From: Guillardia theta CCMP2712
Taxonomy: Eukaryota; Protista; Cryptophyta
NCBI RefSeq assembly: GCF_000315625.1
Contig: NW_005434606.1
Span: 24,057 to 88,056 of the forward strand
Length of the DNA stretch: 64,000 nt
Reading direction: 5' to 3'
The notes under the pieces are model-generated. The model was not told the origin of the DNA. It saw nothing but the letters and a program-made list of their open reading frames with translations, and did not search any database. How positions within the stretch are numbered: position 1 is the stretch's first letter; every line of letters begins with the position of its first letter. Shown in pieces: positions 24,192-50,020 of this stretch. The position numbers and the translations under genes are program-made.

Positions 24192-27100
24192 CTAGTTCTG
24201 TAGGTTCTGCAAGGCCTCCATGACGAGGGAGCGGAACTTGCCGTCCTTGACGTTCACCTTGCTCACGTCGTCCTTGCTGATAGTCTCCAGTGCTGCTCCC
24301 AGCAGCCTCATGGCGTTGTTGTAGTTCCTGTCAGTCACCCCCACGAACTCCATGTCGACGTCTCCTCCTCGGGTGAGGATCGCCATCTGCAGCTGCAGGT
24401 CGATCTCTCCGTCTGTGCACAGGATGCCGCCCGCAAGCCTGGGATGCAGCATGGAGCTGCTGCTCTCGGGGAGGATCCTCCACACCCCCAGCTCGGCGTC
24501 GTTGTTGCCGAAGAGCAGCTGCCTGTGCTTGCTCCACAAGTCCGTGATCTGCGACGCTGTCCCCTTCCCCTTGGCGACAGCCCAGAGGGCGGGGAGAGGT
24601 TCTTCCCAGAGGTCGTAGCAGTCCTCCGAGTAGAGAGCGACGTGCAGTAGCACGTCGTTGAACGACAGCCTCGGGTCCTCCTCGTCCGAGCAGCTGAGCA
24701 ACTGGGCAAACATTCCCCCCCAGAGCCGGGAGATCCGCTCGATGGGCTCATCCGCTAGGATCATCTTCCTGCTGAGAGACACGAGCGTCTGGATGAGAAA
24801 CACAGTCTTCTCCTCTGCGTTGTCGCTCATCTTGCACGAGATCATGTCCTGCATGTGCGTCGACGCCCAGATCAGACAGTCGACCAGCGTGCTCTCAGTC
24901 TCTGTCGGCCTGTCGCTGCTGCCGCCGTCGGGTTGACCCATCGCCCTCAACAGCGCTTGCGGAGAGTCGAGCGAGTTGTCGTAGAGTATCGTCATCCACA
25001 GAGCTGTGCGGTAGGGGCTCAGGTACTTGTCCTCCTCGGCGTTCTCCATGCCGATCTGATACTTGAGAATGTCCTTGGCAATGGCGAGGCTGTCGGAGGG
25101 AGAAGACTTCTTGAGCAGCGAGCACAGGTTGTCGTTCTTGAGTGCCGAAAGCACCTTGGCAGGGGAGGTGCAGACGGAGAGCAGCTCCACCAGCAGCGAG
25201 CTGTCTTGCACGGGCTCCGTGTTCCAGCACTTGTTCTGCACGTCGTTCCAGTCCACCGAGTGTCCGTGCTTGACGGCATCGATGATGTCTTCGAGCCTGG
25301 AGTAGTCGCCCCCCCAGGAGAAGGCGATGCCCTCGGCAAGCTCGTTGTTGCACTCCACCTCCAGCTGCAGCGGGAACCCGCACTGATCCACGAGCTTGTT
25401 CTCGAACATGACCTGCGGATCGTCCATCTTGCTGCATCGCTCGACCCCGCCTGATGCGGGGTCCTTCCTCGCCTGCGCACGCATGTGGCAGCACCAAGCC
25501 GCGATTCTCAGAGCAGGAGGAGCGTCGTAGGCGCGATCGAGGCCGAAGGAGACGAAGTCAGGGAAGTCCATCCCGAGGTTGTCGGCGTTCTCAGTGAGGA
25601 GAGCCGCTTGAAACATGGAGGCCACCATCCCCTTGAGGCTCCGAGTGATGGAGAGGATCGGGTCCTCCCCCCTCTTCGCTCCCTCCATGGCCGCCAGGAA
25701 CGCCTCGGCGAACTGCTGTGCGGTAATGGTGGACACTGTGGGAACCTTGTTCAGCAGGAACCCAGCAAGCTTCTCAGCTGAGATGGACGAGGTCTGCGAC
25801 AAGATGTCCTCGAGCTCGGCGATCCCTCGAAGGGACACGGCCTCGCCCCCAAAGATGCACCGGGCGCAGTGCATCCACTTGCGGATCCCTGAGCCGTTGC
25901 GGGTCTTCTTGGCGTCCATCACCTCGCTCAGCAGGGTGTTTCCGAGACGCGTCACGATGTCGACCACGCGCTCGGGCTCGATGCCGATCTTGGTTCCATC
26001 CTCCTTGAGCTGTTTCAGGTGCTCCAGGTCTCGGGAGTCCTTCCGGTTGGCAATCAGCAGCACGTGGAGCCTTCGCACGTTGAGCCGCAGCCACTGGAAG
26101 AGCTGAACCTTGTGGACGTCCTTGAGCATGTGGAACTCGTCGACTATGAGAAAGAGGTGAGCCGAGGAGTCCGCGATCTCGCACTCGAGGATCTCCGTCA
26201 GGGCCATGTCGACAAGCCGATCGTCACTACCATCTATGAAGGCCTTGGACATCTGATGCCTTCCCTTGAGCTCCTCTGCGATCTGGTTGGAGAAGAAACT
26301 CTTTCCTGCTCCAGGGGGAGAGCAGAGGAGGACGAGGCAGGGCTTGGCTTCCAGCATGATGTCTTTCAGCGACGTCCTGTAGTCGGCAAAGTCTTTCTCG
26401 CTCTTACTGCCCCCTTCCCCTCCGAAGAACTCCGACACAAACCTCTCGGTCTTCTCCCAGCTGCTGTAGAAAGGCTTGCCATTGACAGCCTCGAACTTGG
26501 CGATGGACTCTTTCATCCTCGGGTAGGGCTGAATGTGTGTGGGGCGCAGTCGGACAACGTGCTCTGACTGCAAGTCTGCCTCATTCCGGATGCTCCTCTC
26601 AATAGGAGCAGGAGCAAACTCATACACGCACCGATCTCTGTTCTCCGAGAAGTTCCAGCTTGTCTGCGTGTTCTCTAGGTACACGAACCGCCACGGGTGT
26701 ATCCGAGTGTACTCCGCCAACCATTTCAGCAGCGCGTCCTCGATGCTGTCAAGCCCGGTCACGTACACCAGCCAAGTGTAGGCCGAGAAGTGACCGATGA
26801 TGGTCAGGTACATGCTCGCGTTGTCCTTCGATCGAGTCAGCGCGTCATATCCCAGATCGCAAACTTCAACGATGGCCCCGTGCTTCTTCAGCTCTCCCAA
26901 CGTGCCCCCACGAACGATGTGCACGCCGTACAGGTCGTTCTTGCGCTTGCAGAACGGCAGGAAGTGAGGAGGAACATGGAAGGACCTCTGGAAGAGCGAG
27001 AGGCAGTGGTTGGGGGAGGGCAGCGAGATCGCCACACAGTGGGCGATGACGAGCAGGTTCAAGTCTCCTCCTATGCTGCCGGAAGAGCTGTCTTCGATGC

Positions 27101-30100
27101 ACAGCGACGGGACCCTCGCGGTCGTTGGGCCCTTTTCGAGCTGGTTAAGGAACCAAGACTTGGCGTCTTCTGGCAGGGGTGACCGGACAAGATTGCAGAG
27201 CCAGCTGAGCAGGTCACTGCGGTGAGAGAGCAGGTCGTAGATGTGCTCTGATATGTCCGTGTCTCCCGAGATGTTCGACTTCTTGGTCTTGACCTTGAGA
27301 TAATGTTCCAACGACTTGACTAGGAGGCTCTTGTGGAACACGTAGACTATCGGCAGCCCGTCGCGCTCGTTGTACTTGATTTTGAGCCTCTTGACGTCGA
27401 TCTGAACTTGATACAAGGGAACCTTCTCCCCTGAGAGAGACATGACGGCAAACTTGGAGCAAACTCTGTTCCCGTAGCCCCAGGTGGCTGGGAACAAGGA
27501 GTTCTGAGCTGTTCCGGAGTTGCTCTCAGGGTTATCTGTCGGCAGGTCATGCACATCGTCTATGTAAGTGACTTTCTCCTCTTGTCCTTGGCCGAGGTTT
27601 CTCTCCTTCTTCGCCGAGTCGATGAGACGCTTGGTGTTGTCATCGGTCTTCTTCGTGTAGACCTTCTCCTGCTGCTTCTCCTCCCCTTCCGAGTCAGAGT
27701 CTTCGAAGTGCTGAGTCCAGACCGACTGCGCGTTCAGCCGCTTCCGTCTGGTGATGGAGGTCAGAAACTCCACCGACTGCTCCATGAACTTCTGCTGGGT
27801 GATGTGCTCGTGCGCCGTGATCAGGTTGTTCAGCACCGCGTTGGCATTCCGCGTCCCATCGTTATCGAACCGAACAAGGTACGGCTCGTCGTTGTTGGCT
27901 TCGAAGCTGATTCTCAGCTCTCCATCCACCTCTTCGTTGATTTCCAACTCGTCTCCTCCATTCGCATCGTCCAACCTTGCCAGGAAGCTGCTCTGATTAT
28001 GCTCCGCCAACTTCAAGGTGAACACCATCTGTGACCTTGGCACCCAGTCTCTGATCCCGACGATGAGCGACAGGTTGTTGGACATGGCCTCTCCCAGGTG
28101 AGTCAGGCACTGGCTCTCGACATTCAGATCCTGCTCCAAACTCGGCAGATCCAGGTACTCCAGCACCGTGTTCAGCCCGTTGTCATCCTCCTTGATCTCA
28201 TCCATGATCCTCAGGATGGCTTCGCAGACGATGTTCTCGGACCGGATGTAATCGCAAAACAAGTTCTCTTCCTCCCCCTGCTCGTCGCTAATACGCCTGA
28301 GCTCATTCAGCACCTGATCGATCTCCTTCAATTCATCTGCATCCCAGCCACGAGCTTTCTGCGCAGCAAAGTACGACATCTGGACGATTGATTTGATCGT
28401 TTCAAGAACAGCAGCGTCGAAGTCGAGCACTGCTAGCTTGCAGACGTCTAGCAAGGTGTAGAGGAAGACAGGAGGGTTCTTTGCGCTATCCAGAGATGCT
28501 GCTCCCAACAAGACCATCCAGTCTCCTTCCAAGTTCTTGCGCAGGTAGAACCCCTTGGCTGTGATAGTCGACAACCTCGGGAGGTTGTTGAGATGCTCCC
28601 AGGCTCCCCCGTTGTGGGAGAAGATGGCTTCTATCTCAGCGAGCTGCCCCAGCTCTGCCTCGTCGAAGCTCTTCTGCTGTCGTCGCCGCAAGTTGGTCTG
28701 CTGCGACAGAGGAATCTTTCGTGAGTCTCCGGGGCTTCGCAAGACCGGGTTCAGTCCTGGCACGATATGGACGATGCCGTAGCCGTCCTTGATGTTGAGG
28801 CTCACCAGCTTGCGGGCTGAGATCGTTCGCTCCGCCTGATTCATGTCCCTTCGCAGCTTGCCGGTCACTCGCGAGCTCTTGGACTGCTGGGGACGGAGAC
28901 GATCGGAGGAGAAGGCGGTCTTGAAGAGCGTCAACGTCTTTCGCTCGACAAGAACTTGAGGGCTCTGCCTGTCATGATCGCGAACATGATCGAAGTTGGC
29001 GAACCTCTTGTTCTCCACGTTCTTTGCCCTCCTTCGCGCCATGCTGCCTCGATCTGCAGTCTCAACCGCAGGCGCAGAGGAGGTGTGGAACTCGAAGCCC
29101 TCCTTGAAGATAATATCCTCATAGATCTTCAACTCTCTGCCAGCATTTAAGATATCCTCTATCTTTTGCGGCAGCAAGGTTTGAGCCGGGCATCTCACGT
29201 AATGCTTGTGTTTGTGATTCCTTCTCTTCTTGCTGCCCACAAGATCCAACAGTCTTTGAGACAGCTGCTTGTAGTCATACTTCGCATACAGGTTCGTTGC
29301 GATGTACTCAATCTCGTTCAGAACTGACGAGCTGTAGACAATGTTTTGTCTTTGCCACTCACGAAGCATACACACAACCTCAAACCCCTCGTTCACTGGG
29401 GTGATCCCAATCAGCGTGTACAGCGTGTCTGCTACAGTGACCTGCAGCTTGTCGGAACATCTTTTCAGACCCGAGCACAAGCCTTGGACGCAACTTTGAA
29501 TGATTGCCTCGCCGTCACATGATCGCAGCTGTGAGAAGAAATCTGCGATGGTCACCATGTCTTCGACGACTCTGCTTTGCATCTGAGCCTCATTCGTAGT
29601 GAAGTCCCTCTGAGCAATCGCAGGATTCCTACTGGTCTCCTTGAGGTTGGTTGCCACGTCAGCAAACTTTGCTTCCAAGGCTGATCCATCAATCTGCCAT
29701 GTACTAGTCAAGTCACATTGAGCTGCGAGCACATACACACCGCTTCCAGGAAGGTCCCATGCCCACATTCCGCCAGCCTCTTGAGCTTGTCCACCTGCAA
29801 CGAGGTCCCGAAGGCAAGCGTGTTGACTTGAAGGCCGTACTGCGAGTATTTAGAGTAGAGAAGCTGCAAACCTTGTTAGAGGTCAACGCGTAGAGAACAC
29901 AAAATTTGACCTGCATCTCCCGCTCTCCGTTCTCATGCGAGTCGCCATCGGACATGAACAAAATGACTGGAGGAAGCTGAGAGTTGTCCGTCTGCGACAA
30001 AATGCGGTCGACCTCGCTCAGAGCAGGTCCGAATGAAGTGCCCCCTCCTTTGAGAACAAGGTAAGCGTCCAACTTCGCTAGCGCATCGTCTAGAGTGATA

Positions 30101-33100
30101 TTCTTGCACAGAGTCCTGGCAGATGAGTTGAAGGCAACCATAGAGATCATGTCTTTTGCGCTTGCAGTCTTACGAATATTGAAGAAAGTTCGAACTGCAG
30201 CTACGAGACTTGCCCAACCTGACCCTGCCATGGAGCCAGAGTCGTCCAGCACGAAGATGACGTGGAAGTTTGCGGGGTCGTCTTTGTACTCAGCGGAGAA
30301 ATCCACTTGTGAATACTTCTGCTCAAGCTTATGAGCTATGCTCTCCATGACCTCCTCCATCAACTTGAGCGGAAAGTTCTGGTCGTATGTCTCCCCGTCT
30401 CTGATCTTCTTCGTGTGCTGCAGGTATCGGGTGATGGGGCCCATGTCTCTCACATCGAACTGCAGCAGAAGGGTCAACAGCCACTGGATCGTCAAGCTCT
30501 CGCTGTCGGAGTTGCCTTGGAACAGCGGAATGTTGTCTTTGCCGCTCCGGAAGCGAACATCCATGTACACTGGAAGAGGACAGTAGACCATCTCGGTAGT
30601 GAACTTGGGCTGGCTCCATATCTTTCGCATCTTGAGGAGGTTGTTGTTGAGAGTTTGCTTCAGCCTACTCCCACTCATCTTCCCGAGGTCTTCAAGAGAC
30701 ATGCCTGCAGCATAGAACCAAGCCAAGCCCGTCAGGAAGATCTGCGCTCTCTGCTCCTGAATCTTGGTCTCGTCGATGGAGTTGAGGGTGTCGTCGATAT
30801 GCAAGAGGATGTTGAGGTTGTGCAGCACAAGCTCTGGGGTGACGCCCTTGTCTGTGATAGGAAACATACGCCTGAACTTCTCCTTCTCCTGGAATTGAAG
30901 TCCAGGGAACTGAGAGTTCTCCATAGACTTGATGAGGAAGTCTACACAGCTCCTCGGAAGGTGGCGGGAGTGACACCTAAAACTGTACACGGGCCATCCT
31001 GCTTTCTGAGCCTGACCGACCACGTAGTTCTCGTTCTCGATGAGGTTCTTCGTGCCAATCACGTTGCGCTTGATCGCGTTGAACATGCTGGCTGGCAGCG
31101 TGTGAGGAGCAAGAGTGAACCTGGCAAGATTGCTCAGCCCCTGCAGCGACGAGAAGGAAGGGTCAGCTGCTCGAGCGACTTTCTTGAAGAGCATCCAGCT
31201 TCCTGGCTGCGGGCTGTGACGCAGCTGCAGGGACCGGGCAGGACAGGCCCACCAGCAGAACCAAAGGAGGGCAAGGAAGGACTCGTTGCTCTCCTCTGGT
31301 GTAGCGTTCATGACGGTAAACATAGTGCTCCTGGAGAGCTCGTTGTGCAGCAGCTCGACGTGTTTCAGCAGGTCAGCCTCCTCGAACGTCTTGTTCTTGA
31401 AATGCATGATGTAAACCGTGCAGAGCTTCTTGGAGCTTTCAAACGGCAGGTCGAACTTGTGGGACAGTGCCATCTGCATCAGGTCCCTGGCACACTCGTT
31501 ATCGGCAAAGGTCTTGTAGATGAGGGACCAAGGCTCAGGAATCAGGTCAGAAGGGAAAAGCACTGGCGGTTCGAATCCATGTTCGGACAAAACTTCAATC
31601 ATCTCTACAGCAAGAGCTCGAGTCTGCTGCGTGCACAACCCGTTCAAGAACTCTGCATAGAAATCGAAGGCCTTCTCCTCTCCATGCGCTGCCTTGATGG
31701 CTTCGAGACTTGGCACGAGGATCCCATCCCTGAAGAGGGTGAGCTTGTACGGAGGATTAGCCGACTTGACAAGGTGAAGGAGAGCCTTGGGCCTCACCCG
31801 AGCTGCGATCGACGTGGAAGTATTGACCATGTCCACCATTGCAACTGAGTCTGCGTCCTTAGCCCATTCCAGCCACCCGCCAAGAATATTCTTCATCACC
31901 GACCCATATGTCTCTTGGAGTATCTTGGTCAAGTTTTCTTTGGACAGGCAAACGCTCATCAGAGCTCTACCGATCCTGAGGCTCGGGTCCGACAGCATCT
32001 TGCTGATCTCAACTTTGTTCTTCTCAGACATGATGAAGTCTCTGATCGCATGCTGCTCGCTCAATGTCTCCACCTTATCCAGCGCGATCATCGCCCTTGC
32101 GACCGAGAGGTACAATTGAAGCTTCTCACCGCTCGTTACTTGATCATCGGAGCCCTTGGTCTCAAAGAAGATGCCGTTCTTCAGCAGCAGAATCTGGTCC
32201 TCCTCGAAGTAGTCGTTGGTCAACACGGCAGTGGACCCAGAAACCAGTAGCAGCCACCAGATAGCTGCCGTTCGAGATCTCAGCACGTAGAACTTGTCAG
32301 TCGGCAAGCTGTGGAGCAGTCCCTGGCAAGCAGAGTAATCCCTCTCGATCTCCTGGATCCCATCCTTGCCCAGCGTCAGGTTCACGATCTGGGAAGGGCT
32401 CAAACTCAGCAGCAGCATGATTCGGCTGGGCGAGTGCGTGCAGATATGCTTGAAGACTTCGCTGGTGAGCTCAGGGCCTGTCTGCCACTTGACAAACATC
32501 TCCTCCCAGTTCAGCTCCGCTCCCACGATGGACTGATGCTCCATAATCTCCTGGTGTCGGATGATGGCGTCGCCCTTCCCGGGGTCGAGGTACATGGGGT
32601 ACTTGGAGCGGTTATCATGGAGGTGTGACTGATGGTAAGACAATTCAGCGCACAAGAGCCTGCCGGGGTTGTTGGCACAGTGAACATTGGCGTCCCCCAG
32701 GTTGGCCGTTTGAATCAGGGGGAGGCCGAAAGGGAGGTTCTTCTCCCTGTGAACTAGAGAGCTGCCTTCGTCTGTGTTCTGACAAAGAAAATGGATGTAC
32801 GCCTCAATGCGATGCAGCTGGCTCAAGAACCGAACGCAAGGTTGACGACAGAAGTCCGCAAAGCAGATCAATGGCATCTCATCAGTCCAACTTTCAGATG
32901 TGCATCGGATGTAATGGTTGACATGCCGTGCAAGGAGGCCAGCAAGAGTTTTGCATTCCTCTTCCAGCACTTTGCAAGGTACCATGATGGGCTGATCTGC
33001 CTTGGACAGATTGCTGAAGATCTCCTCCAGGACATGCTTGTTCTCAACTCTCAGCAAGTCGTCATTCTGGTCAAGAAAGTTCAGTAGATTGAGATTCTGC

Positions 33101-37735: not shown

Positions 37736-40700
37736 ATGCCGTCGATTCTCTTCCTGTTTTCTCAAGTAAATTCCTCGGATGACGCAAAAATCACAGTGGA
37801 AGGGGACACGATCGACGTAAAGAATAAATCTTTCGTGCTTTATAGGCTGAAGGGCAAAGGACTCTTGCAAAGTTTGGCAGAAGTATTGATGAAATACTAC
37901 AATTGTTCTGTCAGTTTTCATGACGGTACTCAGAGTAGAGAATTCCAGCTTTCCCTGCCGAAAAAAGTTGATTTAAATATCTGTATTGTTCGGGGGGCAT
38001 CGGAGTTTGCTTCTTCCAATGGCTTGTCTCATGCATTTTGCTCTTGGTGTTCTCAAAATCTGATGAGCAATGATATCAAGCTAGTTCGCCAAAAACTGGA
38101 ATTGGTGTTTGACACAGACAGGAACTGTTCTGTAGTCGTGCTGGAGGGATCTAAAGGTAATGTGACTGGCCCAATACGTTTCTGTGACGTGCTCACGTCG
38201 GATGAATTTTCATCACAAGTCATCTGTGACATTTTCAATCGTCCGGAGATGTCTTTGTCCCGATCCATTGCACTTTTCTCGGCGAAACTGAGAAGTCTGA
38301 TAGCCTGGACACCACTTCACGCAGTTTTTCATCAGCACATAGTTCATGACTTTAGCTCTTGCATGAGCAAGGCTGAGCGCAAATCAATCATCGACTCTAT
38401 TTCACCTACTCAATTGGATACAGTGTTTGACACCCTCAGGCTCCCTCAATATGTGAGAATTTTCCTGGCCTTCACTTCGTCCTACTTCTCATCAGCATTT
38501 GATAGCGAACTTGAAAAACTTGTTTTGACAGACTGCCCTGATTCTTTCAATGGTGATCAAGACTTCGCCCTGCTGGCGGTGATGATAGATTCTTACATGC
38601 TGTTGGCTCAGAAAAGGACCTTCAGAGAAACAATTCGGCATGTCAAGGTCGCGGGATCATTTTCAGTCGCTGCACTCGCAACGGTACTGAATGTGAGAGA
38701 TCAACCTACTGGACGACTTGAGGTGATGCTGACTCCGAGAGTAGATTTTAACTCGGTACAACTCCAATCAGTCAATTCGTTTCTGACTTCTTTTTCTGGA
38801 ACACGTTCACATTCAAGAATTCTTTCAACGTTTGTCTCAATATTGAATAGATGTTGTGCGCAAATGATCCTAACGACTGGACCCTCAGACGCATGGAGCA
38901 TTTTCAATCCAATACTTTCCGTCAATCAAATCATTGAAAATACAATCAAAGCAAGAAACAAAACAAGACTGATAGATGTCATTGGTGAGCTGCAAACCTT
39001 GAGTACCAAAGACAAGAATTTCCTCAATAACAACATTAATGGCGTCTCAAATGCTATGGTAAGGATGAGCAAGTGCGAAATCGAACGTAGATACTTGAGG
39101 TCGTTTCTTAGGAACATGCAAGTTGCAAAGCTAGAAAGGAACTTCGAAGAGTTTAATTTTGTTCACTTCTGTGACCAAGAGCACTTCTGTCAATTGATCA
39201 AGCAAAATGACTGGCTTCTGAATGCAGATGAAGCATTTATTGATTGGCCCTTGCTGCTCTCACAACAGTCTGAAAATCAAAAATTGTTCGCTCTCCACTA
39301 CATCGAGAACTGGCTGGCAAACAAGCTGCCAGAAGTCACTCGATTCTTGCAATCACTGAGCAACTTGCGATATTCTCCATGGACTAAAACTGAAACGAAG
39401 ATTGATCAATTTGCGATAAGCCCTGAATTGTACCTGACATTTCAAGAACTTTATGATTATTGTGTTTGTAATGTCAAACTATCGGATGCCAGGGGAGCAT
39501 TGGGCGATTTGAATGTGATTTTTCTGCTCCGAAACCATCAGCTCTGGTCTTCAAAGTTGGTTTCAGCAATATTAAAGTCTCGTCCCCTAGAGCACCTGAG
39601 TACCGATCTCAGAAACGAGCGCATTTCTATACCGATAACTTTCATACGATTCTTGACCACAGAAACAGAGGCCGATGCGAAATCGAACAATACAAACTTT
39701 GGCGCATGGTATGGTGAAAAGCTGCGAATGAAACAGACGGCAAAGAGTTTTGAGATTTTTCTGCCGCCGAAGGATGTTGCCGAGCAGACGAAAGCGAGCA
39801 CCGCATTCCGGGATTGGTTGAAACGAACTGTCAGTCATGTGGAGACAGAAGCAACAAAAAACCATTTCAAACTTCTTCAAGACAGACTTAGATCTGCACA
39901 GCTGATGACCTTTCCTGAATGCTACATTTCTGCCGACAATAATGCAATAGAAGCCATTGATTTTCAGAAGGCTGTCAACATCTTTCGTGACAAAGTTTCA
40001 GATTCCGAGCTGTTCAATTCATGCGCAAGGAAACTGTTGAGTACCTGTGAGGCAAATGGAACTTTCCAAGCAATCTATAAAGCAAGAGAGCTAGCTGTGC
40101 AAATGCTTCTTGAGACGATCAGGGGAGAAAAACATCACAAAGATGTCAAATCAAGAACTTCCAGTCAGGTGAACAAAAGCAAAGAGATTGAAGCCCTTGA
40201 ATGCCTGCTGCCCCAAAATGCTTGTCGCGAGAGTGATCGAAAGGAACTCCTCTCGGTCTATTATGAGTTTGTTCACTCTGATCCAGCAGTCATCTTCAAC
40301 TACTCCAAGAACATGATTTTCTTCTTCAAAGATGTGCTCAAATCAAACATCCCTCCTCGACTTCAAAGCTTTGTCACCCAGTATGAAGGGATTGACTTAA
40401 AAAAGCTTACCATGCTTGGTGAAAAATTGAAATGGGACGATCATGACTTGATTTGCAACGCAATTCTCCATCCTCAGGTGGGAACCTTTCGTCACATGCT
40501 CGTACAATTTCGGGATGACATTCTTGATAAGACGGCAGAGCATTGCTGGCCACAGATAGATTCTTTGTCACAGCTTGCCCCAATCTTGTCATTCCTCGGA
40601 GAAGTTTGTCCGACAAGAGATTCGTTAGAAAGAAAGTTGAAAAACTTGAGAGTTATGATCATTGCCAACAGAAACTTAGCTCGACCCGTCGCTTTGCTTG

Positions 40701-43700
40701 ATTCTCTATCGCACACGGTATACGAGATGTGCAATGCGTCGCAGCCAGACGCAGCACTAGCGGCTGTGTGCAAGATATTGAAATCTCAGATCTTGATCAA
40801 TGTGGCAGAGGCAAACCTCTCGATGAATCAGCTGGTTCAGTTGTTTCAGTTGGTCGATTCTCCAGACTTGATTGCAAGGAAGAATTTCAGAATCCTACGA
40901 CAGAGCAAGTTTGTGATCGACATGGAAAGACTTGCGTCCTTTGCCAGTGAGCCTTTTGATGAGGGCCAAGCAGGCTTGGTTGTTTCTCTAGAGACTGGAG
41001 ATAGCGACAGCAAATTTCGCCTACTGGGAGGTCGCGTGTGGACTAGGATAGTCGGGCAAGACATGTTTGCTTTGTTCACTGAGGTGATAGTTCAGATCAA
41101 CTCGGAGAAAGAATTGAACCCATCGGTTGAGGACCCAGAACTGGACAAAATGATTGTCAGCATCGAAGAAATGCAAGCCCGTGCCCATGAGGTTTTGAAA
41201 CTTGCGAATGTATTCCTTGAATATTTCAAACTTGGCTGGAGCTACAAATCAAGTGGAAAGATAGATTTCAACTGCGTCCAACCCGAGCAGTATAGATTGG
41301 GTGCGCTAAAGATTATGCGAGAGAAGAGACCTGAGGACGAGATCTCGTCAAAGAACTTCATCTCGAGTGAGAGCAGAAACCTCAGAGACATCTACCTCCG
41401 AGCCCGCGACCGCTTCCCTTGGACGTCATTCTGTTTTCGTAGAGACGTGATGACCATGAAAGACACTCCTTGGGTCAAACTTGTCAACGGCATAGCATCG
41501 ACCTATCCGGACGAATCTTGCGATGCTCCTCCTGCACCCACTCAACTGGAAGGTGAATTGTTTCACTGGCTGACCTCAAAGAGCAAAGCTAGCCTTGGGT
41601 CCGTGGAGTCAAAAGCAAAGTTCGAGGGCTTTCCCTTGGATGCAATTCGCTCCGGGAGTCGTATCTGGTTGGCAACAAGCGTGAACGATGACATGATGAC
41701 TGTAACGCTGTCGATGCTCCAGCTGTTGGCAGTCAACTACCCCCTGGAAACCTCCCTCCTCCCATGCGACTGCTCGGTCACTCACGAAAGTTTTCAAGGC
41801 CTAATTTGGAGGATTGAAGCAGCGTCTGAGCTGGTAGATAGAGATGCAGAATACTTTGAAGTTGCTCGCGTTCTCCTATGCCAAGGCGGAGTTGTTATCC
41901 ACAGGCCTGAGACATTAAAGCACACCATCCAAGATCTGCTGGTTTCAGCGCTGCTCAGGTACATGACTTGTTGTTCACGATCGTCGAGGGTCTACCCGGT
42001 CATCGCCTTGATTCTTCCTGAGGGCAGCAGTCGCTTTCAAACGATTCTCAGGTCCATGGTGGAAGTGAGGATGGTGAACACGTCAGAGTTGATAGCCATG
42101 CAAGAGGAGTCGATGGTCACTTGCACCAACGTGAAGTCAGTGGTGGTGATGCCGACTGTCAACTCAGCCCTAGGACGACGACCAGACGATCATCTTGTCC
42201 CTAGCGACACGTTCAGAGTGCAGCTATCCCATGAGATGACCATCCAGGACCTCGTGCGAGTCATCAAGCAGAGATCTGACGACGACAAGCCGATCTCTCT
42301 TGACTTTGGAAGCAGCTTCGCATCCTTTGCGAATGGATCTTTATCTGGAGTCATCATCTCATACTTCTTGTGGGGGGTGGTAGGGCAGCTTCACTTGCAG
42401 CCGATAGTACTTCGACATGCCACCTCCTTGTACGCAGAGATAGTTTGCGATGACAGCAGCTCCCTCAAAAGGAGGTTCCCGATCCTCAAGCTTGTGCCTC
42501 CGCAACGGATTTCGGTCATTTCACCTTTCGTGATCAATTTGGATGATAGCGTTTCAAATTTGAGTCCAAGTTTTCATCAGCTTGTTCAGTCATGCACTCA
42601 CCGCCCAGTGTATGATCGAGATGTTATGAGAGCCATGCAGGCGTTGTTTGAAGTCAACTCAGATGCTGGCAGCCCCAACAAACAACCATTGCCCTTCGTC
42701 TACACTCCTCTTGCCCTGACCATCATCAGCAAAATAGCCTTGCAGGTCAAACAGGCCTTCCAGGCTGAAGCGACAGGAACCTTTCCTGTCTTGCTCAGCG
42801 GTGACACAGGAACCGGCAAGACATACCTCTTGTACAAGTTCCTGGAGCTTCTCATGGGGAGTGGTGTGCTGGAAAACCTGAGTGACACAGTTTCAATCTA
42901 CACCCTTTCAGCAAGATTCAAAACCCGAGAGATTGAAGAACTTGGGCTGGAAATTAAGAAGGAAGCGTTCAACAAGAGTGCAGGAAAGTCCAAGAGACGG
43001 GAAGTGCCGATGGTGATCCTAGACGAAGTCACGAGCAGCCCAGCCCAAGAAGCCATCAAGCGCCTCATGGCAAACCGAGAGATCAAGAACGGAGTGTCGA
43101 ACCTCACTCGGATCAAGCACAATGACCTCATCCTGCTGGGTACCTGCAACCCTGACCCGGTGCGAGACGACGTCTTCTCCCTCTCCCAGGAGATGGAAAC
43201 AGTCAAGATCGACGTACAGAACCTTGACGCAGGTGTCAGGAGAAAGTTCATCGAAGAGCGACTGCAAGACAGAGAGTACGGGCTAAAGTTGCCGAATGCT
43301 GAAACCTTTAGGAAGGCAGTGGTGCTGATAGAAACTTCCTTCATGGCAGATGAACAGAACGCCTCCTTCATAGGCTGCGTCTCTTTGCGCGATGCTGTCC
43401 GGTGCATCTCGCTGGCTAAGAAAGCTCTCTACCACTGGCCCGATTCCTGCGGCAAGTCAATCTTTGAAATGCTCTCGCTCAGCGACCTGACGGTAGATGA
43501 CGAGCTGAGGGCGCTGGGACTGTCTTGCTACATCTGCTTTGGAATTCGAACCATCCCCCGAGCCGCCTTCTTTGAGCGGGTGGAAGCCAAGACCGGCATC
43601 GAACTGGAGCATATCATCTGCACATTTCAAGACTCGATATTGAACGAGCTTGCTATCCCATCCAATGTAGTCAAGACGCAAGCGCTCAAGGAGAACCTGA

Positions 43701-46700
43701 CAGTATCTGTGATATGCCTGGCCCTTAGACACCCGCTCCTCTTGCTCGGCTGCGACGGCACATCCAAGACGCTCTCCTTGAACATGGCGATCTCTCAGAT
43801 GCAGGGCAAGTTCTCCAAGTCGACTTTCCTTCAGGGGATATCGAGGATGCAGAGTTTCAACATTCAGCTATCGGAGGCGACCAGCGCCTCTCACATAGCC
43901 AAGATCAAGAGCACGGTCCTCGACTGGGAGAAGAAGTCCAAGTTGTCAGTGCCCTGCATCTTCATGGAGGAGCTGAGCATGGCGAAGATGGGATCCAGCG
44001 GGCCCCTCCGGGCGCTGCACGACGTGCTTGACGCGCATCAAGACACGGCAGGAGCTCAGGCAAGACATGAGATAGGGTCTGGGTCGAACCCCTTTGCCTT
44101 CGTTGCCACGAGCAACTACAAACCTGGCACCAACCAGATCCCCATCGGTCGAGCTCTTGCGAACAGGATGATCGTCTTGGCTCACCCTGACCCATCACTA
44201 GAGGACCTGAAGTCCCTGGCTGTCCGGGTGGGGATGAACGAGTCCAGCTCCAGCTCCAGCTCCAGCTCCAGCTCTGGGGATCTCAACTCCAACGACGACG
44301 AGAGAGTGAAAGAGATCATCGAAAACGCCATCGACCGTCTCTCTGTGCTGGTTCCGCACTCTGTTTCTGTTCGCTCCCTCCTCAGCTTCGCGCGATGTTT
44401 GGGGATGCAGCTCTCCAGGGGCAACGACGAGCTCGAGTCCTGCTTGCTCGCGGCCACTTGCCACCTGCAGAAGATCAACCCAGAGGAGACGAGCAAGGTC
44501 CTGCGAGCGGTCATGGGGAATGAGCGATACGAGCTTCCTAGCCTTGCCTCCGTGTTGGAGAGTTTGGCAGGCCTCAACGGCACGAAACGGCCGATCATGT
44601 TCCTTTATCAGTCAGTGGGTGACATCTACACAATCATTCGGCACGTGAGGCAGGCGATACAGAAGCAGATGAAACGATCGCAAGAGGACAGGACCCAGAA
44701 GGTGGTTGGTATATGCCCATGTAGCTCAAACAAGAGCACTGAAGGGATGCCATCGTCGGAGAAAGACTCACTGCTGCCAGAGAGACTGTACGCTCTGCTC
44801 AATCTCAAGTCGAGCGTTGAAGCTGGTGGGACCACGTTCTTGCTGAACCCGGAGCCGATGCTGCAAGGCATGCACGCGCTGCTGAATGACTTTGAGCAGA
44901 GCCATTCGACCCTGCAGATCAACGAGTGCAACGAGAACGTGTCCATCAACCCGACCTCTCACATCATCCTCCTCGTCCACTGGGAGTCTTCGCTCAGTTT
45001 CCACAGCGCCCTCCTGTCTCGCACTGCGATCGTGAACCTCGAGATGTTCGGAAGGTCGGGGAGGCGCGTGTGGGACAGCCCCTACTCGAGGATCCTGGAC
45101 TTGTACGCAAAGCAACGAGGGCTCATGGATGCAGGACAAATGGACAAAGAAATCGAACTGCTGGAGGAGTTAGAGACGCCTTTGGATAGCTTCATTCGCT
45201 CCATCGTGACTGGTGAGGGTCAGTACTATCAGCAAACTAGAGCAAAGCTCACGTTTATCTTCGTTGACAACATCTTGCCTTGTTTCGTCTGTCGCAACAG
45301 TAACATCCTAGCTGTGGACGGGGCTCGACACGACACCCAGTCCTCACTGCTGGAGGCCATACAGAACGGCGTCAAGTCCTTGGCAAACGACCTAACAGAG
45401 CATGTGTGCCTGATGATTGATCTCTCGTCCTCGGACTCTAAGAACGCCATCGAAGTTCTTGCGCTCTTGGGTTTCTCAGGTTTCACATTTCGCGTGTCTG
45501 CCAAGCCCTCGCTCTCGCAGCAGTTCATGAAACTCAGCGCGAAAGAGAGCAAGAGAGTCGTCGTCATCCTCAACTCCTGCCTCGCGCGGTCCTTCTCTTG
45601 CGGAAGATGCTCAGCATGGAAGGAGCCCAACGCGCCGATGCTGGAGCACATCATGAAGCACTACTTCATTCGAAACATCTCCATCCCATACCCTGACTGG
45701 CCATCCATCTCCGACATTGCAAAAGATCCTTCTACCTTGTTTCTGAAGTTTGTCGCAACGGTGCATGACAGGATAACAGAGACGCATGCGATGCCCAAGA
45801 CTCCCAACAAGGCAGAGTTGCTCCTTGAACTGTGTAAGACCCTCGCAACGAGCTTGGTAGGGGAGGACGACCTGAAGAACCTCCTCTTTTGTCCTTACCA
45901 AGACCTCGTGAACCTCACTGAGCTTCGTCCTCTCCAAGAGATCCAAGAGAGTCGCCTTCAGACCTTCAGCAAGGTAGTGCAGGAAGTCAGGAGGACGAGA
46001 AGCGCTCTGTCGCTCAGGTCAAGTCTAGTCGAGCGATGCTTGCAGCTTAGCGAGGTCGTGGCAGCCAAGATAGTCTCCAAGGTGTCAAAGGCCTGCCTGT
46101 TCCCTGACAAACAGAGGTTGTCGTATATCCGCGCCGTCTTGTCTTCTCAAGTGTTCCCTTGGCAACGAGATCTGATCCGCGCCAGCATGGGAGGAAGAGC
46201 GATGCTGTCTGTCGCAAGCCCCTTCCTTGTGCCGACCTCTCCGTCCGTTCAGTTCCTCCCCTTCGTCGCCGACATGCTCGAAGTTGTGCTGAGAGGAGAA
46301 GTAGGATACATGGAAGGCCACCTGGACGTTGAGACGATCCGGGGGCGTATACAGCTGTCCTTCCCTTCGCTGCTGGGGTTGGAGCTGGGCGAGATCTTCC
46401 CTGACTTCATCCGAGAGGTTATCTTGTACGTGGCGAGGAAGCACAACCTCGGCAGCAAGGGATGGCGGGACTCCTTGTCTTGTCAGTGGCTGGAAGCTGC
46501 ATCCCAAGGGGATCTAGCTCGGGCCATGTGGGTTTTGATCAATTTCGAGTCATGGATAGCAGCAGGAACACTCTTCTGCTGCCCCCCCGACCCGCACAGC
46601 AACTCGGGCAGGCGGCAAGAGGACGGTAAGGAGGACCGTTACTTGCTCGTTGAAAGTCTTGTGCGGAAGATTGTTGAAATGATGAGACAGTCAAATCAGC

Positions 46701-49700
46701 AGCGAGATGGGAACATGATCAGGTTTCACGCCATCTTGCCTCGACTCATCAAGTTTGCGATCGAGAACTTGCTGAGCAGTAGCCGAAAGTGTCACAGTGA
46801 CGCAAACTTGTCCTCCTTGTATCAAGTGACTCTTCTCTGGCAATTAAAACAGATGAGCGACGGCTCTACTGTCAAAGCTGCGTTCCATCAATCGTGCGAG
46901 GTGATCTTTGACAAGAAACTTGACAACTACCTCAACGGCTTTGAGACCAACACACTGCAACTGCTGTCGAGCGTCTTTCTCAGGTGTCACGAGATTAAAG
47001 ATCTGCCGGATAAATCAATCGCTCGGGTTGTCAACAAGCTGGGAGTAGAGCACGGAGGCCCGTCGTTCCTGGCGTCATGTGCTAGGATCAAGAACTCCGA
47101 CATCCAGGTCTTTCTCAGCTACCTGGACTTGAGCTTTCAGAGGTCCAAGGTACATCAGGTCCATGAAGTTGCTCGCCGAGAGGAGACGAGGGTGGTTGCG
47201 AGAGGACTCCGCTACTTCTTCCAAGCGACAGGTTGGAGTGTCGACGCTCTGGTCTACTTCATAATTGAGAACCGACATGCTGCCGCTTCTCCCTGGGCTG
47301 CCATGTACCTTGCGCTGAGCTCCATCCTCATACCCAGTCTCGTCCAGGACGAGAGTTTCTTGTCGCAGATCAAGGGAGAGCAGGCGACCGCGGCCGTCCA
47401 ATGGAAGCAGCTGTTTGCCCCGAGCTACAGCCTCCCGGTCAAGAACTTTCTCATCCGCTGCCTCGTCTCAAGGTTTGACGAGCGTGGGATGTATCGGCTC
47501 AAGGACTTGCCGTCTGCCGTGGGCGAATGGGCCCGGCCGTACGTGAAGAAGTTCCTGTCTGAAAGCTTCCAGGAGCTCAGCGTGCTGCCCGACTTCATGG
47601 AGCATCTGGAGCACGCGGAGACAGACTCCCCCTGGCTCTATGCCCTGACTAGGAGCTGCTGCTCTCTTAGGAGGACCCCAGCAGAAAGCCTGACGGGAGA
47701 GCAGACCTCCATGCTCGACGCCATGAGGAGCTCTCTCGAGGCGGACATGGACTTCTGCTCCGCTGCTGCCGCGCTGTGGTGCGCGATCCTGGTGATCGTC
47801 CATGACGGCACAGTGCTGACGAGCGCAAGCTTCACGCAGGAGCAGAACCTGAGCAGCCTGTGCCTCCCTGCTGCTCCTGACGGCAACCTGGAGACCATCC
47901 AGAAGTACAAGGAGATGATAGGCGTCACCTCCATCAACCGCTGCCCCTGCGGTTACGTCTACGGCATCGGAAACTGCGGCAGGCCCGACCACCAGGGACG
48001 CTGCCCGGAGTGCGGGCAGGCGCTGGGAGGAAACAATCACCAGTGGGCGAACAACGTCAGCCACACGCTCACCGGCATCGCTGACGATACAGTGCGAGGG
48101 GTTGAGACGTCCTGGTGCTTCGCTGGCCCGAGCTACACTGAGCGGGGCCTCCATCCGATGGAGTACAGGCTGCTGTCTGTGTTGCTGCTGATCCCTCTTG
48201 CTGTGTGGAGTCCAAGGAGGGGGGAGAGGAGGGAGCAGCTGGCCAAGCACTGGGCAGAGCTCAGGGCTGCCTGCGGGCTGAGCAGCGACACGGAGACGCA
48301 ACTGTTTGTCATCGGGGTGATGAAACGAGCAACGATGATGAACCGCTCCGACTTCGCGTTCACCGGGCGGAGCTTCCACGACAAGAACGACCGCCAGGCG
48401 CACGAGAAAGCCTTTAGCGAAACATTCCAACGCGTGATGGGCGGGGAGACATGTCAGGTGGTGATAGCAGAGGCTTCAAGACTCATCCAGAGCAAAGTTG
48501 AGGAGCAGTCTCCCTTCATAGAGCTGCGCGACTCCCGCATCCTTGCCATGGACCAGGAGCAGGCCAGCCGATGCTTCGCTCCTCAGGTGCTGCAAGTCGT
48601 GACGACTCGGTGGGAGGAGGAAGGAGACGAGAGGCTGATGAGCATCCGGCTGGCGGTGACGCGAGAGCCAGACAGCTTCCCGGTGCTCGCGCGATGTCTC
48701 TTTGACCGCAACTCCAGCGACGTATCGGAGGAGCACGCTCAACGGCTCGACCTCGACCTCAACCGCAAACTCTCTTGCTTCCCCAGCCTCGCCAAAGGCC
48801 TCTGGAGGGTCGGGGCAGCCGCTGCAGGCATGCAGGACCCGCCTCTCGCCAAGAATGCTCTCGAGTTCATTGAGTCTTGGATAGGAGACGCGGATGAGCT
48901 CCAACAGTTCAAGCTCAGCTGGGAGGTCTGCCGGTTCGGGCATCGCATCGGATGTCAGATCGTGTCCGACGTGGGCGACCTCTCTGCCCTACAAGTGCGA
49001 GACCTGCTGTGGGTGGCGGATAGTCCAGCTGAGGTCGGGCTGTCGCGGACTGAGCTGCTGCTGCAAACTCTCACCGACGCGCACAACCAGCAAGTCGAGC
49101 TGCTGTCACGAGGCGACTCGAGTGAGCCCGGGGAGGGTCGAGGCTTCGACGTCTCCCTGTCGACCTGGGAGACGGTCGAGCGTCTCCCCACGTTCCTCAT
49201 CCCCTGGGACGAGGCAAGGTCCGTGATCGAGAAGTTCTGCAGAGAATGTCCCAACGCGCACGTGGATGCGTCATCCCTTGAGTCGATCGCCCACCAGTGG
49301 ATCTCGCAGCGAGTCTCCTTCCTCCGCCTCCTCCTCAATGGATGGCCCAGGTTGCAGGTGCTGGACGAGAGCAGCGGGCAAGTGGCGGTAAGCTCGCAGG
49401 TTCGGTTCCTACCTGGGGAGGTGCATCGGCACATCCAGGGGTGGATGAAGGAGTATGGCCTCAGGAGAGATGTCGTCGTCGCCAGCGTCCGCCTCCTTGA
49501 CCGCATGGCCCAGCTCTTCGGGAGCTCCTCCGTCTCGGGGGAGGCGCCGCTGGTCCGGGACAGCCTAAAGAGCATGAAGCTCGAGAGCGATGTCCCTGCG
49601 CTGCTTGGGAGCATCCTGGAGGCAGGAGCCGGGCTGAAGCTGAAGTTCAAGCACTTGAAGGCGCTGCAGGAGTGCCTACTGGATCAGCTGGACTACCGGC

Positions 49701-50020
49701 AGGAGGAAGCTCTTGCGGGGGAGTACAGGCACAAGTACGAGGGAGAGGAGCTGAGGGAGGTGGTGAAGGGGCTGGAGGCTGACGTCATCAAGTACGCGTT
49801 CGACAAGTCGGTTGCACTGTGTGAGATGGTGAGCCGGAACCTCTACAGCCACACGGACCCCATCCAACTCTACCTCCCTTACGCCCAGCTGCCCTATGAG
49901 GAGGACGACAGCGTCGAGCTGGAGACAGGTTTCTCCTTCATCTTCTCCCAGCCCGTTCAGCTCAGGCACCTGTACGGCCTCACCTGCGCCCTCCGCGAGG
50001 CTTACAATGAACTTCGTTGA
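37736..50020 (+). CDS. RNF213 (mysterin)-like giant AAA+ ATPase / RZ-finger E3 ligase, 4,094-aa uninterrupted ORF (true start may be in an upstream exon)
   Basis: AAA module: FPVLLSGDTGTGKT, MVILDEV, LLGTCNP, CVSLRDAVRC. Then ALKENL and a second module: PLLLLGCDGTSKTL..MQG, IFMEELSMAK..GPLRALHDVLD, FVATSN..ANRMIVL, all paralleling RNF213 motifs. RZ finger CPCGYVYGIGNCGRP....RCPECGQALGGNNH at 47942-48040, followed by RNF213-like E3-core helices (LHPMEYRLL, RQAHEKAF, LTDAHNQQV). Confidence 0.88.
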   Translation: MPSILFLFSQVNSSDDAKITVEGDTIDVKNKSFVLYRLKGKGLLQSLAEVLMKYYNCSVSFHDGTQSREFQLSLPKKVDLNICIVRGASEFASSNGLSHAFCSWCSQNLMSNDIKLVRQKLELVFDTDRNCSVVVLEGSKGNVTGPIRFCDVLTSDEFSSQVICDIFNRPEMSLSRSIALFSAKLRSLIAWTPLHAVFHQHIVHDFSSCMSKAERKSIIDSISPTQLDTVFDTLRLPQYVRIFLAFTSSYFSSAFDSELEKLVLTDCPDSFNGDQDFALLAVMIDSYMLLAQKRTFRETIRHVKVAGSFSVAALATVLNVRDQPTGRLEVMLTPRVDFNSVQLQSVNSFLTSFSGTRSHSRILSTFVSILNRCCAQMILTTGPSDAWSIFNPILSVNQIIENTIKARNKTRLIDVIGELQTLSTKDKNFLNNNINGVSNAMVRMSKCEIERRYLRSFLRNMQVAKLERNFEEFNFVHFCDQEHFCQLIKQNDWLLNADEAFIDWPLLLSQQSENQKLFALHYIENWLANKLPEVTRFLQSLSNLRYSPWTKTETKIDQFAISPELYLTFQELYDYCVCNVKLSDARGALGDLNVIFLLRNHQLWSSKLVSAILKSRPLEHLSTDLRNERISIPITFIRFLTTETEADAKSNNTNFGAWYGEKLRMKQTAKSFEIFLPPKDVAEQTKASTAFRDWLKRTVSHVETEATKNHFKLLQDRLRSAQLMTFPECYISADNNAIEAIDFQKAVNIFRDKVSDSELFNSCARKLLSTCEANGTFQAIYKARELAVQMLLETIRGEKHHKDVKSRTSSQVNKSKEIEALECLLPQNACRESDRKELLSVYYEFVHSDPAVIFNYSKNMIFFFKDVLKSNIPPRLQSFVTQYEGIDLKKLTMLGEKLKWDDHDLICNAILHPQVGTFRHMLVQFRDDILDKTAEHCWPQIDSLSQLAPILSFLGEVCPTRDSLERKLKNLRVMIIANRNLARPVALLDSLSHTVYEMCNASQPDAALAAVCKILKSQILINVAEANLSMNQLVQLFQLVDSPDLIARKNFRILRQSKFVIDMERLASFASEPFDEGQAGLVVSLETGDSDSKFRLLGGRVWTRIVGQDMFALFTEVIVQINSEKELNPSVEDPELDKMIVSIEEMQARAHEVLKLANVFLEYFKLGWSYKSSGKIDFNCVQPEQYRLGALKIMREKRPEDEISSKNFISSESRNLRDIYLRARDRFPWTSFCFRRDVMTMKDTPWVKLVNGIASTYPDESCDAPPAPTQLEGELFHWLTSKSKASLGSVESKAKFEGFPLDAIRSGSRIWLATSVNDDMMTVTLSMLQLLAVNYPLETSLLPCDCSVTHESFQGLIWRIEAASELVDRDAEYFEVARVLLCQGGVVIHRPETLKHTIQDLLVSALLRYMTCCSRSSRVYPVIALILPEGSSRFQTILRSMVEVRMVNTSELIAMQEESMVTCTNVKSVVVMPTVNSALGRRPDDHLVPSDTFRVQLSHEMTIQDLVRVIKQRSDDDKPISLDFGSSFASFANGSLSGVIISYFLWGVVGQLHLQPIVLRHATSLYAEIVCDDSSSLKRRFPILKLVPPQRISVISPFVINLDDSVSNLSPSFHQLVQSCTHRPVYDRDVMRAMQALFEVNSDAGSPNKQPLPFVYTPLALTIISKIALQVKQAFQAEATGTFPVLLSGDTGTGKTYLLYKFLELLMGSGVLENLSDTVSIYTLSARFKTREIEELGLEIKKEAFNKSAGKSKRREVPMVILDEVTSSPAQEAIKRLMANREIKNGVSNLTRIKHNDLILLGTCNPDPVRDDVFSLSQEMETVKIDVQNLDAGVRRKFIEERLQDREYGLKLPNAETFRKAVVLIETSFMADEQNASFIGCVSLRDAVRCISLAKKALYHWPDSCGKSIFEMLSLSDLTVDDELRALGLSCYICFGIRTIPRAAFFERVEAKTGIELEHIICTFQDSILNELAIPSNVVKTQALKENLTVSVICLALRHPLLLLGCDGTSKTLSLNMAISQMQGKFSKSTFLQGISRMQSFNIQLSEATSASHIAKIKSTVLDWEKKSKLSVPCIFMEELSMAKMGSSGPLRALHDVLDAHQDTAGAQARHEIGSGSNPFAFVATSNYKPGTNQIPIGRALANRMIVLAHPDPSLEDLKSLAVRVGMNESSSSSSSSSSSGDLNSNDDERVKEIIENAIDRLSVLVPHSVSVRSLLSFARCLGMQLSRGNDELESCLLAATCHLQKINPEETSKVLRAVMGNERYELPSLASVLESLAGLNGTKRPIMFLYQSVGDIYTIIRHVRQAIQKQMKRSQEDRTQKVVGICPCSSNKSTEGMPSSEKDSLLPERLYALLNLKSSVEAGGTTFLLNPEPMLQGMHALLNDFEQSHSTLQINECNENVSINPTSHIILLVHWESSLSFHSALLSRTAIVNLEMFGRSGRRVWDSPYSRILDLYAKQRGLMDAGQMDKEIELLEELETPLDSFIRSIVTGEGQYYQQTRAKLTFIFVDNILPCFVCRNSNILAVDGARHDTQSSLLEAIQNGVKSLANDLTEHVCLMIDLSSSDSKNAIEVLALLGFSGFTFRVSAKPSLSQQFMKLSAKESKRVVVILNSCLARSFSCGRCSAWKEPNAPMLEHIMKHYFIRNISIPYPDWPSISDIAKDPSTLFLKFVATVHDRITETHAMPKTPNKAELLLELCKTLATSLVGEDDLKNLLFCPYQDLVNLTELRPLQEIQESRLQTFSKVVQEVRRTRSALSLRSSLVERCLQLSEVVAAKIVSKVSKACLFPDKQRLSYIRAVLSSQVFPWQRDLIRASMGGRAMLSVASPFLVPTSPSVQFLPFVADMLEVVLRGEVGYMEGHLDVETIRGRIQLSFPSLLGLELGEIFPDFIREVILYVARKHNLGSKGWRDSLSCQWLEAASQGDLARAMWVLINFESWIAAGTLFCCPPDPHSNSGRRQEDGKEDRYLLVESLVRKIVEMMRQSNQQRDGNMIRFHAILPRLIKFAIENLLSSSRKCHSDANLSSLYQVTLLWQLKQMSDGSTVKAAFHQSCEVIFDKKLDNYLNGFETNTLQLLSSVFLRCHEIKDLPDKSIARVVNKLGVEHGGPSFLASCARIKNSDIQVFLSYLDLSFQRSKVHQVHEVARREETRVVARGLRYFFQATGWSVDALVYFIIENRHAAASPWAAMYLALSSILIPSLVQDESFLSQIKGEQATAAVQWKQLFAPSYSLPVKNFLIRCLVSRFDERGMYRLKDLPSAVGEWARPYVKKFLSESFQELSVLPDFMEHLEHAETDSPWLYALTRSCCSLRRTPAESLTGEQTSMLDAMRSSLEADMDFCSAAAALWCAILVIVHDGTVLTSASFTQEQNLSSLCLPAAPDGNLETIQKYKEMIGVTSINRCPCGYVYGIGNCGRPDHQGRCPECGQALGGNNHQWANNVSHTLTGIADDTVRGVETSWCFAGPSYTERGLHPMEYRLLSVLLLIPLAVWSPRRGERREQLAKHWAELRAACGLSSDTETQLFVIGVMKRATMMNRSDFAFTGRSFHDKNDRQAHEKAFSETFQRVMGGETCQVVIAEASRLIQSKVEEQSPFIELRDSRILAMDQEQASRCFAPQVLQVVTTRWEEEGDERLMSIRLAVTREPDSFPVLARCLFDRNSSDVSEEHAQRLDLDLNRKLSCFPSLAKGLWRVGAAAAGMQDPPLAKNALEFIESWIGDADELQQFKLSWEVCRFGHRIGCQIVSDVGDLSALQVRDLLWVADSPAEVGLSRTELLLQTLTDAHNQQVELLSRGDSSEPGEGRGFDVSLSTWETVERLPTFLIPWDEARSVIEKFCRECPNAHVDASSLESIAHQWISQRVSFLRLLLNGWPRLQVLDESSGQVAVSSQVRFLPGEVHRHIQGWMKEYGLRRDVVVASVRLLDRMAQLFGSSSVSGEAPLVRDSLKSMKLESDVPALLGSILEAGAGLKLKFKHLKALQECLLDQLDYRQEEALAGEYRHKYEGEELREVVKGLEADVIKYAFDKSVALCEMVSRNLYSHTDPIQLYLPYAQLPYEEDDSVELETGFSFIFSQPVQLRHLYGLTCALREAYNELR

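Follow-up and report, generated by a model that had tools for sequence, protein, structure and literature searches.

The RZ finger of mammalian RNF213 is required for ubiquitylation of bacterial lipopolysaccharide. Midasin has a layout of six N-terminal AAA units and a C-terminal MIDAS, and plants carry head-to-head sensor/helper NLR pairs, e.g. RGA4/RGA5 and RRS1/RPS4. Functionally conserved gene pairs are rare in eukaryotes. RNF213, midasin and these NLR pairs are among the closest systems to a locus that we have analyzed in nuclear DNA of the cryptophyte Guillardia theta CCMP2712 (GCA_000315625.1, scaffold JH993032.1). The window, i.e. the whole stretch of 64,000 nucleotides to which all positions below refer, contains a head-to-head pair of giant genes, designated A and B. 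Gene B encodes a predicted RNF213-type ligase, and what is new is that this ligase has a dedicated, conserved partner, gene A, from an undescribed family of giant ATPases. A-B adjacency was found at five loci; the four lineages concerned (cryptophytes, stramenopiles, kinetoplastids and one metagenomic organism) represent three or more supergroups, and A and B are probably functionally coupled, judging from gene order and phylogeny.

The pair is laid out as follows:

24192-36632, minus strand: gene A, giant ATPase of a protist family, three exons, ~4,080-4,096 amino acids (aa), modeled from open reading frame (ORF) pieces, GT-AG junctions, the annotated product and relatives
36633-37735, no strand: divergent spacer, 1,103 bp from start to start, presumed shared promoter region
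37736-50020, plus strand: gene B, RNF213-family giant AAA+/RZ-finger protein, one uninterrupted ORF of 4,094 aa

An earlier note on this DNA, made without database searches, had described two genes of near-equal length (~4,100 aa) diverging from a ~1.1-kb spacer, and these models confirm it. The domain content that it listed, AAA+ and RZ in B and vWA and AAA+ in A, was likewise recovered using Pfam. Its statement that both genes are almost intron-free in an intron-dense neighbourhood holds for the intron poverty of the pair, while the intron-dense setting was only loosely supported; the annotated spans of the neighbouring genes exceed their coding sequences, and there is no ORF longer than 537 aa in the 24 kb upstream.

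Genomic context was retrieved for nine genes of the A family. The earlier note had suggested testing whether homologues recur as divergent neighbours; homologues of both genes lie side by side in at least three further, very distant lineages, head-to-head in two (L004 and L021-L023) and in tandem in the third (Bodo). On a 27-kb assembly contig (L004), a 4,011-aa A homologue and a 4,095-aa RZ-type gene are arranged head-to-head, separated by 1.6 kb, and gene B matches the RZ-type gene with 31% identity over the AAA core (E 1.5e-71, tblastn). This contig is labyrinthulomycete-like, since an Arc1p-like neighbour is 57% identical to its counterpart in the thraustochytrid Hondaea. In one organism recovered from three metagenomes (L021-L023), a 3,645-aa A gene is head-to-head with a 3,437-aa gene encoding an RNF213-like AAA pair and an intact RZ finger, with the two starts only 61 bp apart. 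At two loci of Bodo saltans (L008 and L020), an RNF213-like AAA gene lies immediately upstream of A in tandem, and another A paralogue (A') lies downstream. All three Bodo genes are co-directional; this RNF213-like, A, A' cassette is present at least twice, evidently through duplication of the whole cassette. Outside the pairs, the neighbouring genes of one lineage are unrelated to those of another, so the recurrence is not residual synteny. Four close B homologues (L009-L012), found in a metagenome scan with the B AAA alignment, are on contigs that stop before any partner position.

Some further features of these contigs were recorded. The organism of L021-L023 has no representative among the prokaryotic species genomes scanned; its contig also encodes LtrA-like, SSF transporter and radical-SAM/DUF3641 proteins in a compact layout at ~41% guanine-cytosine (GC) content. 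A zf-TRAF protein (L003, 16320-18095) is encoded 3 kb downstream of the A homologue on the labyrinthulomycete-like contig. The Bodo RNF213-like genes encode a Cys-rich CxxCPC...YCCxxC...PC...H motif beyond their two AAA modules.

Gene trees of both families fit a history of co-inheritance. For A, clade I unites the proteins of G. theta, L004 and L021, with a Shimodaira-Hasegawa-like approximate likelihood ratio test (SH-aLRT) support of 99. The two Bodo A genes that are linked to B group as sisters, as do the Bodo downstream paralogues, and two more clades are made up of the choanoflagellate-type A proteins and their neighbours. For B, the partners encoded at the G. theta, L004 and L021 loci likewise group together (99), and the two partners from Bodo are sister to each other (100), with animal and fungal RNF213-like proteins placed apart. 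Long branches limit resolution in both trees, and thus only coarse congruence is claimed. Eukaryotic gene order is mostly non-functional and certain A-family genes have no B neighbour, as would be expected if the adjacency were coincidental and A and B functionally unrelated. Against this, the adjacency recurs at five loci with non-conserved flanks and matching trees, and chance adjacency would be expected at ~10^-4 to 10^-3 per locus (a rough estimate rather than a computed value, assuming ~10^4 genes and few B genes). Coincidence is therefore very unlikely, to the point that we give it almost no weight, and A and B would function together.

A different account of the same pattern is that the pair is a laterally transferred cassette, in which case the recurrence would reflect co-transfer as a unit by some vector rather than ancient vertical descent, and the intron poverty would mark recent arrival. 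The nearly intron-free state of A and B in G. theta, the lack of introns in both genes of L004 and L021, the patchy phyletic distribution and the non-conserved flanks all favor such a history. It is set against the deep divergence between lineages and against pattern scans that returned no A relative in 185,579 prokaryotic species genomes and no A or B relative in IMG/VR viral contigs. In addition, no terminal repeats or transposon ends were found around the pair, only purine-rich low-complexity tracts. We regard lateral transfer as doubtful; it addresses the origin of the pair rather than its function, and is compatible with the coupled module that we favor.

By its sequence, gene B belongs to the RNF213 family and is a predicted ubiquitin ligase. 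The features on which this assignment draws are as follows:

42770-43180, plus strand: first Walker-competent AAA module of gene B (Pfam AAA_5/AAA_7, aa 1679-1815), with GDTGTGKT at aa 1689 and an ILDE Walker B
43736-44119, plus strand: second AAA module of gene B (aa 2001-2128), with GCDGTSKT and an FMEE Walker B, aligning to the RNF213 AAA3-AAA4 region
47936-48061, plus strand: RZ-type zinc finger of gene B (PF20173, aa 3401-3442, E 6e-12, 45.4 bits against a cutoff of 27)

Two hallmarks of RNF213 (mysterin) of vertebrates are thus shared by B, namely an adjacent pair of dynein-type AAA modules competent in Walker A and B and homologous to AAA3-AAA4, and an RZ finger near the C-terminus, in which the Cys/His pattern is intact (CPCG...CG...CPEC...GG..H, aa 3403-3435). 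When gene B was compared to all PDB sequences using phmmer, RNF213 was the sole match (E 1.7e-18), and a profile built from gene B and five relatives again retrieved RNF213 only (E 7.5e-63), over the AAA3-AAA4 region. On RNF213 chain 7oik_A, the family profile covers residues ~2375-2875 (E 1.2e-62). In RNF213, catalytic competence is confined to AAA3 and AAA4 (PMC7311170), and the presence of Walker A and Walker B in both B modules agrees with this. No RING domain was found in gene B by Pfam or as a C3HC4 pattern, and RING is also absent from the Pfam lists of most non-vertebrate RNF213-like matches. Because the RING is dispensable for RNF213 E3 activity (PMC7311170), its absence lowers the strict RNF213 membership of B only slightly. 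B differs further from human RNF213 in being ~1,100 aa shorter, in having similarity that is detectable by sequence only across the AAA pair and the RZ finger, and in being encoded beside a dedicated giant partner gene; no such partner of RNF213 was found in the searchable literature.

Gene A belongs to a large protist family. A phmmer search with its last 1,200 residues against 1.84 billion cluster representatives returned 286 relatives, 71 of them at E <= 1e-30 and many of them full-length (3,400-4,860 aa). Named sources are Hanusia phi, Amoebophrya, Monosiga brevicollis, Barroeca monosierra, Salpingoeca infusionum, Bodo saltans (several paralogues) and Kipferlia bialata, and all of the named members are annotated as "hypothetical". 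In the searchable literature, no description was found of the A family, of an RNF213 partner gene or of the RNF213-like genes of these protists, and nothing relevant on RNF213 with vWA/MoxR or on these locus tags. The earlier note had called A a novel giant; A is not unique to G. theta. The conserved C-terminal ~1,000 aa contain two modules:

25695-26339, minus strand: active AAA+ module of gene A, from invariant columns in 29 members, the Pfam AAA match and an AlphaFold (AF2) model
26520-26927, minus strand: pre-AAA alpha/beta domain of gene A, conserved and without Walker A, from alignments A1, A3 and A7 and an AF2 model

In an alignment of 29 family members, the AAA+ module has an invariant Walker A (SPPGxGK[ST]), Walker B (DE[YF]H) and sensor-1 (N-R); the G. 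theta protein has SPPGAGKS (26298-26321), DEFH (26130-26141) and the N-R sensor-1. Upstream of it, the pre-AAA domain carries the invariant signature LLKWxAE[YH]T...PWRF...ENRDRC, with invariant D, K, E and E-R-D-R residues, and a conserved helical region follows the AAA+ module at the C-terminus. G. theta A has all of these family motifs, and is collinear with the relative P0018 over aa 84-4047. Pfam detects only the vWA and a weak PF00004 AAA in gene A. The AF2 model of the C-terminal 1,200 residues has a predicted local distance difference test (pLDDT) of 80.8 and a predicted TM-score (pTM) of 0.73, and the pre-AAA domain alone has a pLDDT of 84.4; both models are confident. Foldseek with the C-terminal model gave generic AAA+ folds (RFC, p97, NSF, dynein) at low TM-score, and with the pre-AAA domain gave only weak AAA+ matches (Hda, Vps4, DnaA) at E >= 0.0065. 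Taken together, the family motifs, models, Foldseek results and profile matches indicate that A carries one active AAA+ module preceded by the pre-AAA domain, which on its modeled fold is probably a degenerate AAA-like module. A nuclease or effector fold was also considered for the D/K/E...ERDR domain and found no support, as Foldseek points to an AAA-like fold.

The earlier note had drawn on MoxR/midasin-clade ATPases that work with vWA/MIDAS partners. The ATPase of A is not of this clade: profile matches are to PF00004/AAA_22 and weakly to RFC/CTF18 and Rpt, with clamp-loader or classical AAA as the best, and there was no AAA_5 or AAA_3 match in gene A. Sequence searches of solved structures (pieces 1-3; profiles A1 and A6) gave only marginal AAA matches, and for the N-terminal ~2,900 residues no relative could be detected in any solved structure. 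The candidate explanation that A is a diverged RNF213 paralogue was rejected, since hhalign of the A and B family profiles aligns the Walker A loop only, at a probability of 4.7%, and BLASTP was blank.

The vWA of gene A has a distribution of its own, which was traced with a family-derived vWA hidden Markov model (HMM):

29749-30279, minus strand: vWA/MIDAS domain of gene A (aa ~2083-2259; Pfam VWA, E 6.4e-11), a lineage-specific insert

The MIDAS DxSxS motif is intact (DDSGS, aa 2094). In the full-length family alignment, aa ~2001-2300 of gene A fall in columns occupied by 15-35% of the sequences. G. theta A and P0015, a relative with 74% identity to it, are the only proteins in which the vWA is internal, apart from partial coverage in the copies from Hanusia, and a C-terminal vWA occurs in a separate, choanoflagellate-type clade (P0053, P0059, P0067, P0046 and P0047). 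No vWA was detected by the family HMM in P0018, P0038, P0073 or P0097, which are the A partners in the other A-B pairs, or in the nearest relative, P0014. From this distribution, the vWA of A is an insert of the Guillardia/Hanusia lineage.

This bears on a comparison with MoxR-vWA pairs (RavA-ViaA, NorQ-NorD, CbbQ-CbbO) and midasin, which the earlier note had taken as the model for the pairing. The likeness in G. theta is that an AAA_5-type ATPase (B) adjoins a vWA/MIDAS protein (A) with an intact MIDAS. However, since the vWA is lineage-specific and absent from the other A partners and from P0014, coupling of the MoxR/vWA or midasin kind cannot underlie the pairing. The AAA of A itself is outside the MoxR clade, A has no prokaryotic relatives among the genomes scanned, and, unlike midasin, A has a single Walker-competent AAA near its C-terminus and, in G. 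theta, an internal vWA.

The explanation that we favor, with moderate confidence, is that the locus is a conserved two-gene module of two giant AAA+ proteins that act together. A and B would be co-expressed from the shared spacer, and the proteins would assemble or act sequentially as a cytosolic surveillance/ubiquitylation machine in which A may supply ATP-gated target engagement or licensing and B, as the ligase, would attach ubiquitin. In the Guillardia/Hanusia lineage, A would have acquired the internal MIDAS-type vWA as an additional ligand-binding module. A cytosolic, ATP-gated ubiquitylation machine with B as ligase and A engaging or licensing its targets is our best-supported guess. 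The assignment of sensing to A and ubiquitylation to B, and a role in defence, are suggested by analogy with animal RNF213; we infer that A and B interact physically or functionally, that they act in this direction, and that the role is in immunity rather than housekeeping. The earlier note had likewise proposed a co-functioning module, with recognition by a vWA-AAA+ protein and ubiquitylation by the RNF213-like protein; recurrent adjacency and coarse tree agreement bear out the module, whereas this specific logic did not gain support.

Several points weigh against this interpretation. Approximately nine independent contexts were covered, several with short flanks, and the adjacency is not universal: an Amoebophrya A gene has no B within 10 kb, L024 has two A genes in tandem, and in Monosiga brevicollis (L019), L005 and L007 the neighbour of an A protein having a C-terminal vWA is not B but an A-family paralogue (clade IV "A2"). 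The RZ finger was undetected in the Bodo B-like proteins. Homology between A and B is undetectable and nothing points to an interface. Finally, the defence interpretation is an analogy drawn from a single source, vertebrate RNF213.

A functionally coupled module could also serve housekeeping, in organelle or lipid-droplet surface remodelling or in protein quality control. Neither sequence holds anything pathogen-specific, PADLOC returned noise-level P-loop matches and no real match (a result that also counts against a defensive module), and the flanks contain ordinary cellular genes. A role for RNF213 on lipid droplets in mammals is documented (PMC6400562), which fits the same idea. It fits less well with the patchy distribution, with lineage-specific expansions (Bodo has at least five A-family genes and two B-like genes, Hanusia at least two copies of A), with the low identity between lineages (20-35%), and with domain accretion that leaves the vWA internal, C-terminal or absent. 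For these reasons, accessory or conflict genes are a better fit than core machinery, and a conflict or immune role would fit all four observations. Housekeeping is accordingly an unlikely function, though one to be kept in mind beside the surveillance and ubiquitylation machine favored here.

The earlier note had also drawn an analogy with plant NLR pairs. It is apt for gene arrangement, in that A and B are two large NTPase genes diverging from a short common spacer and this arrangement is conserved across lineages. It does not extend to the proteins: Pfam found no NB-ARC/STAND NTPase, LRR, TIR or CC in A or B, the two belong to unrelated families, and the Bodo genes are in tandem. The choanoflagellate-type A-paralogue pairs are closer in one respect, as they comprise the same A family, with a C-terminal-vWA member beside a second giant AAA+ gene, but the partner there is an A2 paralogue and not an RNF213-like gene. 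These A/A2 pairs are a distinct conserved arrangement of choanoflagellate-type genomes, head-to-head in Monosiga and convergent in L005 and L007.

That such a pair has persisted in cryptophytes, stramenopiles and kinetoplastids points strongly, and free of assumptions, to a common function. The pair names a candidate partner for RNF213-class ligases, whose activation and target recognition remain poorly understood, and defines a large family of ~4,000-residue ATPases that previously lacked any annotation. A broader, speculative proposal, which we hold only tentatively, is that RNF213-type ligases ancestrally shared a two-giant-ATPase machine with the A family, which would then be the obligate sensor or licensing partner gating RZ-finger ubiquitylation of non-self or non-protein targets. 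Such an ancient, pre-animal innate-immune module of eukaryotes might persist in free-living protists, either as a gene pair or as a triple of the form B-A-A', its partner having been lost or replaced in metazoans. Thraustochytrids and Bodo are tractable organisms for asking what RNF213-type enzymes did before animals.

With regard to the gene models, gene A is read on the minus strand from three ORF pieces (36632-34647, 34566-29713 and 29768-24192) that are connected by two short GT-AG introns:

34569-34675, minus strand: predicted intron 1 of gene A, 107 nt, GTATTG...TTCAG, the most canonical choice
29694-29736, minus strand: predicted intron 2 of gene A, 43 nt, GTATGT...GGCAG, at ~aa 2263

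With the most canonical junctions (34675-34569 and 29736-29694), the product is 4,096 aa, while the public annotation has 4,079 aa, a length obtained with alternative boundaries of intron 2. Many GT-AG combinations preserve the frame, and for this reason the splice boundaries of gene A are not fixable from sequence. Intron 2 lies at the C-terminal edge of the vWA insert (aa 2083-2259), a position that would be consistent with the vWA having been gained as an exon-bounded block. The public model of gene B (GUITHDRAFT_113541, 3,354 aa) starts at ORF residue 724 and thereby omits the first 723 codons (37736-39904). The longer reading is preferable and the public model is N-terminally truncated, because relatives align from ~residue 593 and 723 open codons precede the annotated start. 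An exact-sequence look-up of the 4,094-aa ORF was empty, owing to the shorter public model.

The window contains no other paralogue of A or B. GC content follows a symmetric gradient between 24000 and 50000, with a minimum beside the spacer (0.43 at 38-40 kb and 0.49 at 34-36 kb) and values of 0.61-0.62 at both 3' ends. The spacer contains the microsatellites (AGGAC)n at 37007-37077 and (GAGGA)n at 37089-37140. Each of the three intergenic regions that border the pair contains purine-rich (GGAGG)n/(AGGAC)n tracts (24107-24166, 37007-37140, 37148-37620 and 50020-50089), i.e. directly beyond each stop codon and inside the spacer. On the 3' side of gene B, at ~50502-60000 (L001 20949-30116), lie genes for a Ser/Thr kinase, ATG8 (~55068-55537), a small LRR protein and a WD40+RING protein. 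The position of ATG8 beside an RNF213-like ligase is suggestive, and the neighbourhood at the other loci does not conserve ATG8. Upstream of the pair, an ORF encoding BTB/POZ and double Myb domains was found at 8225-9838, which is unrelated to the pair described here.

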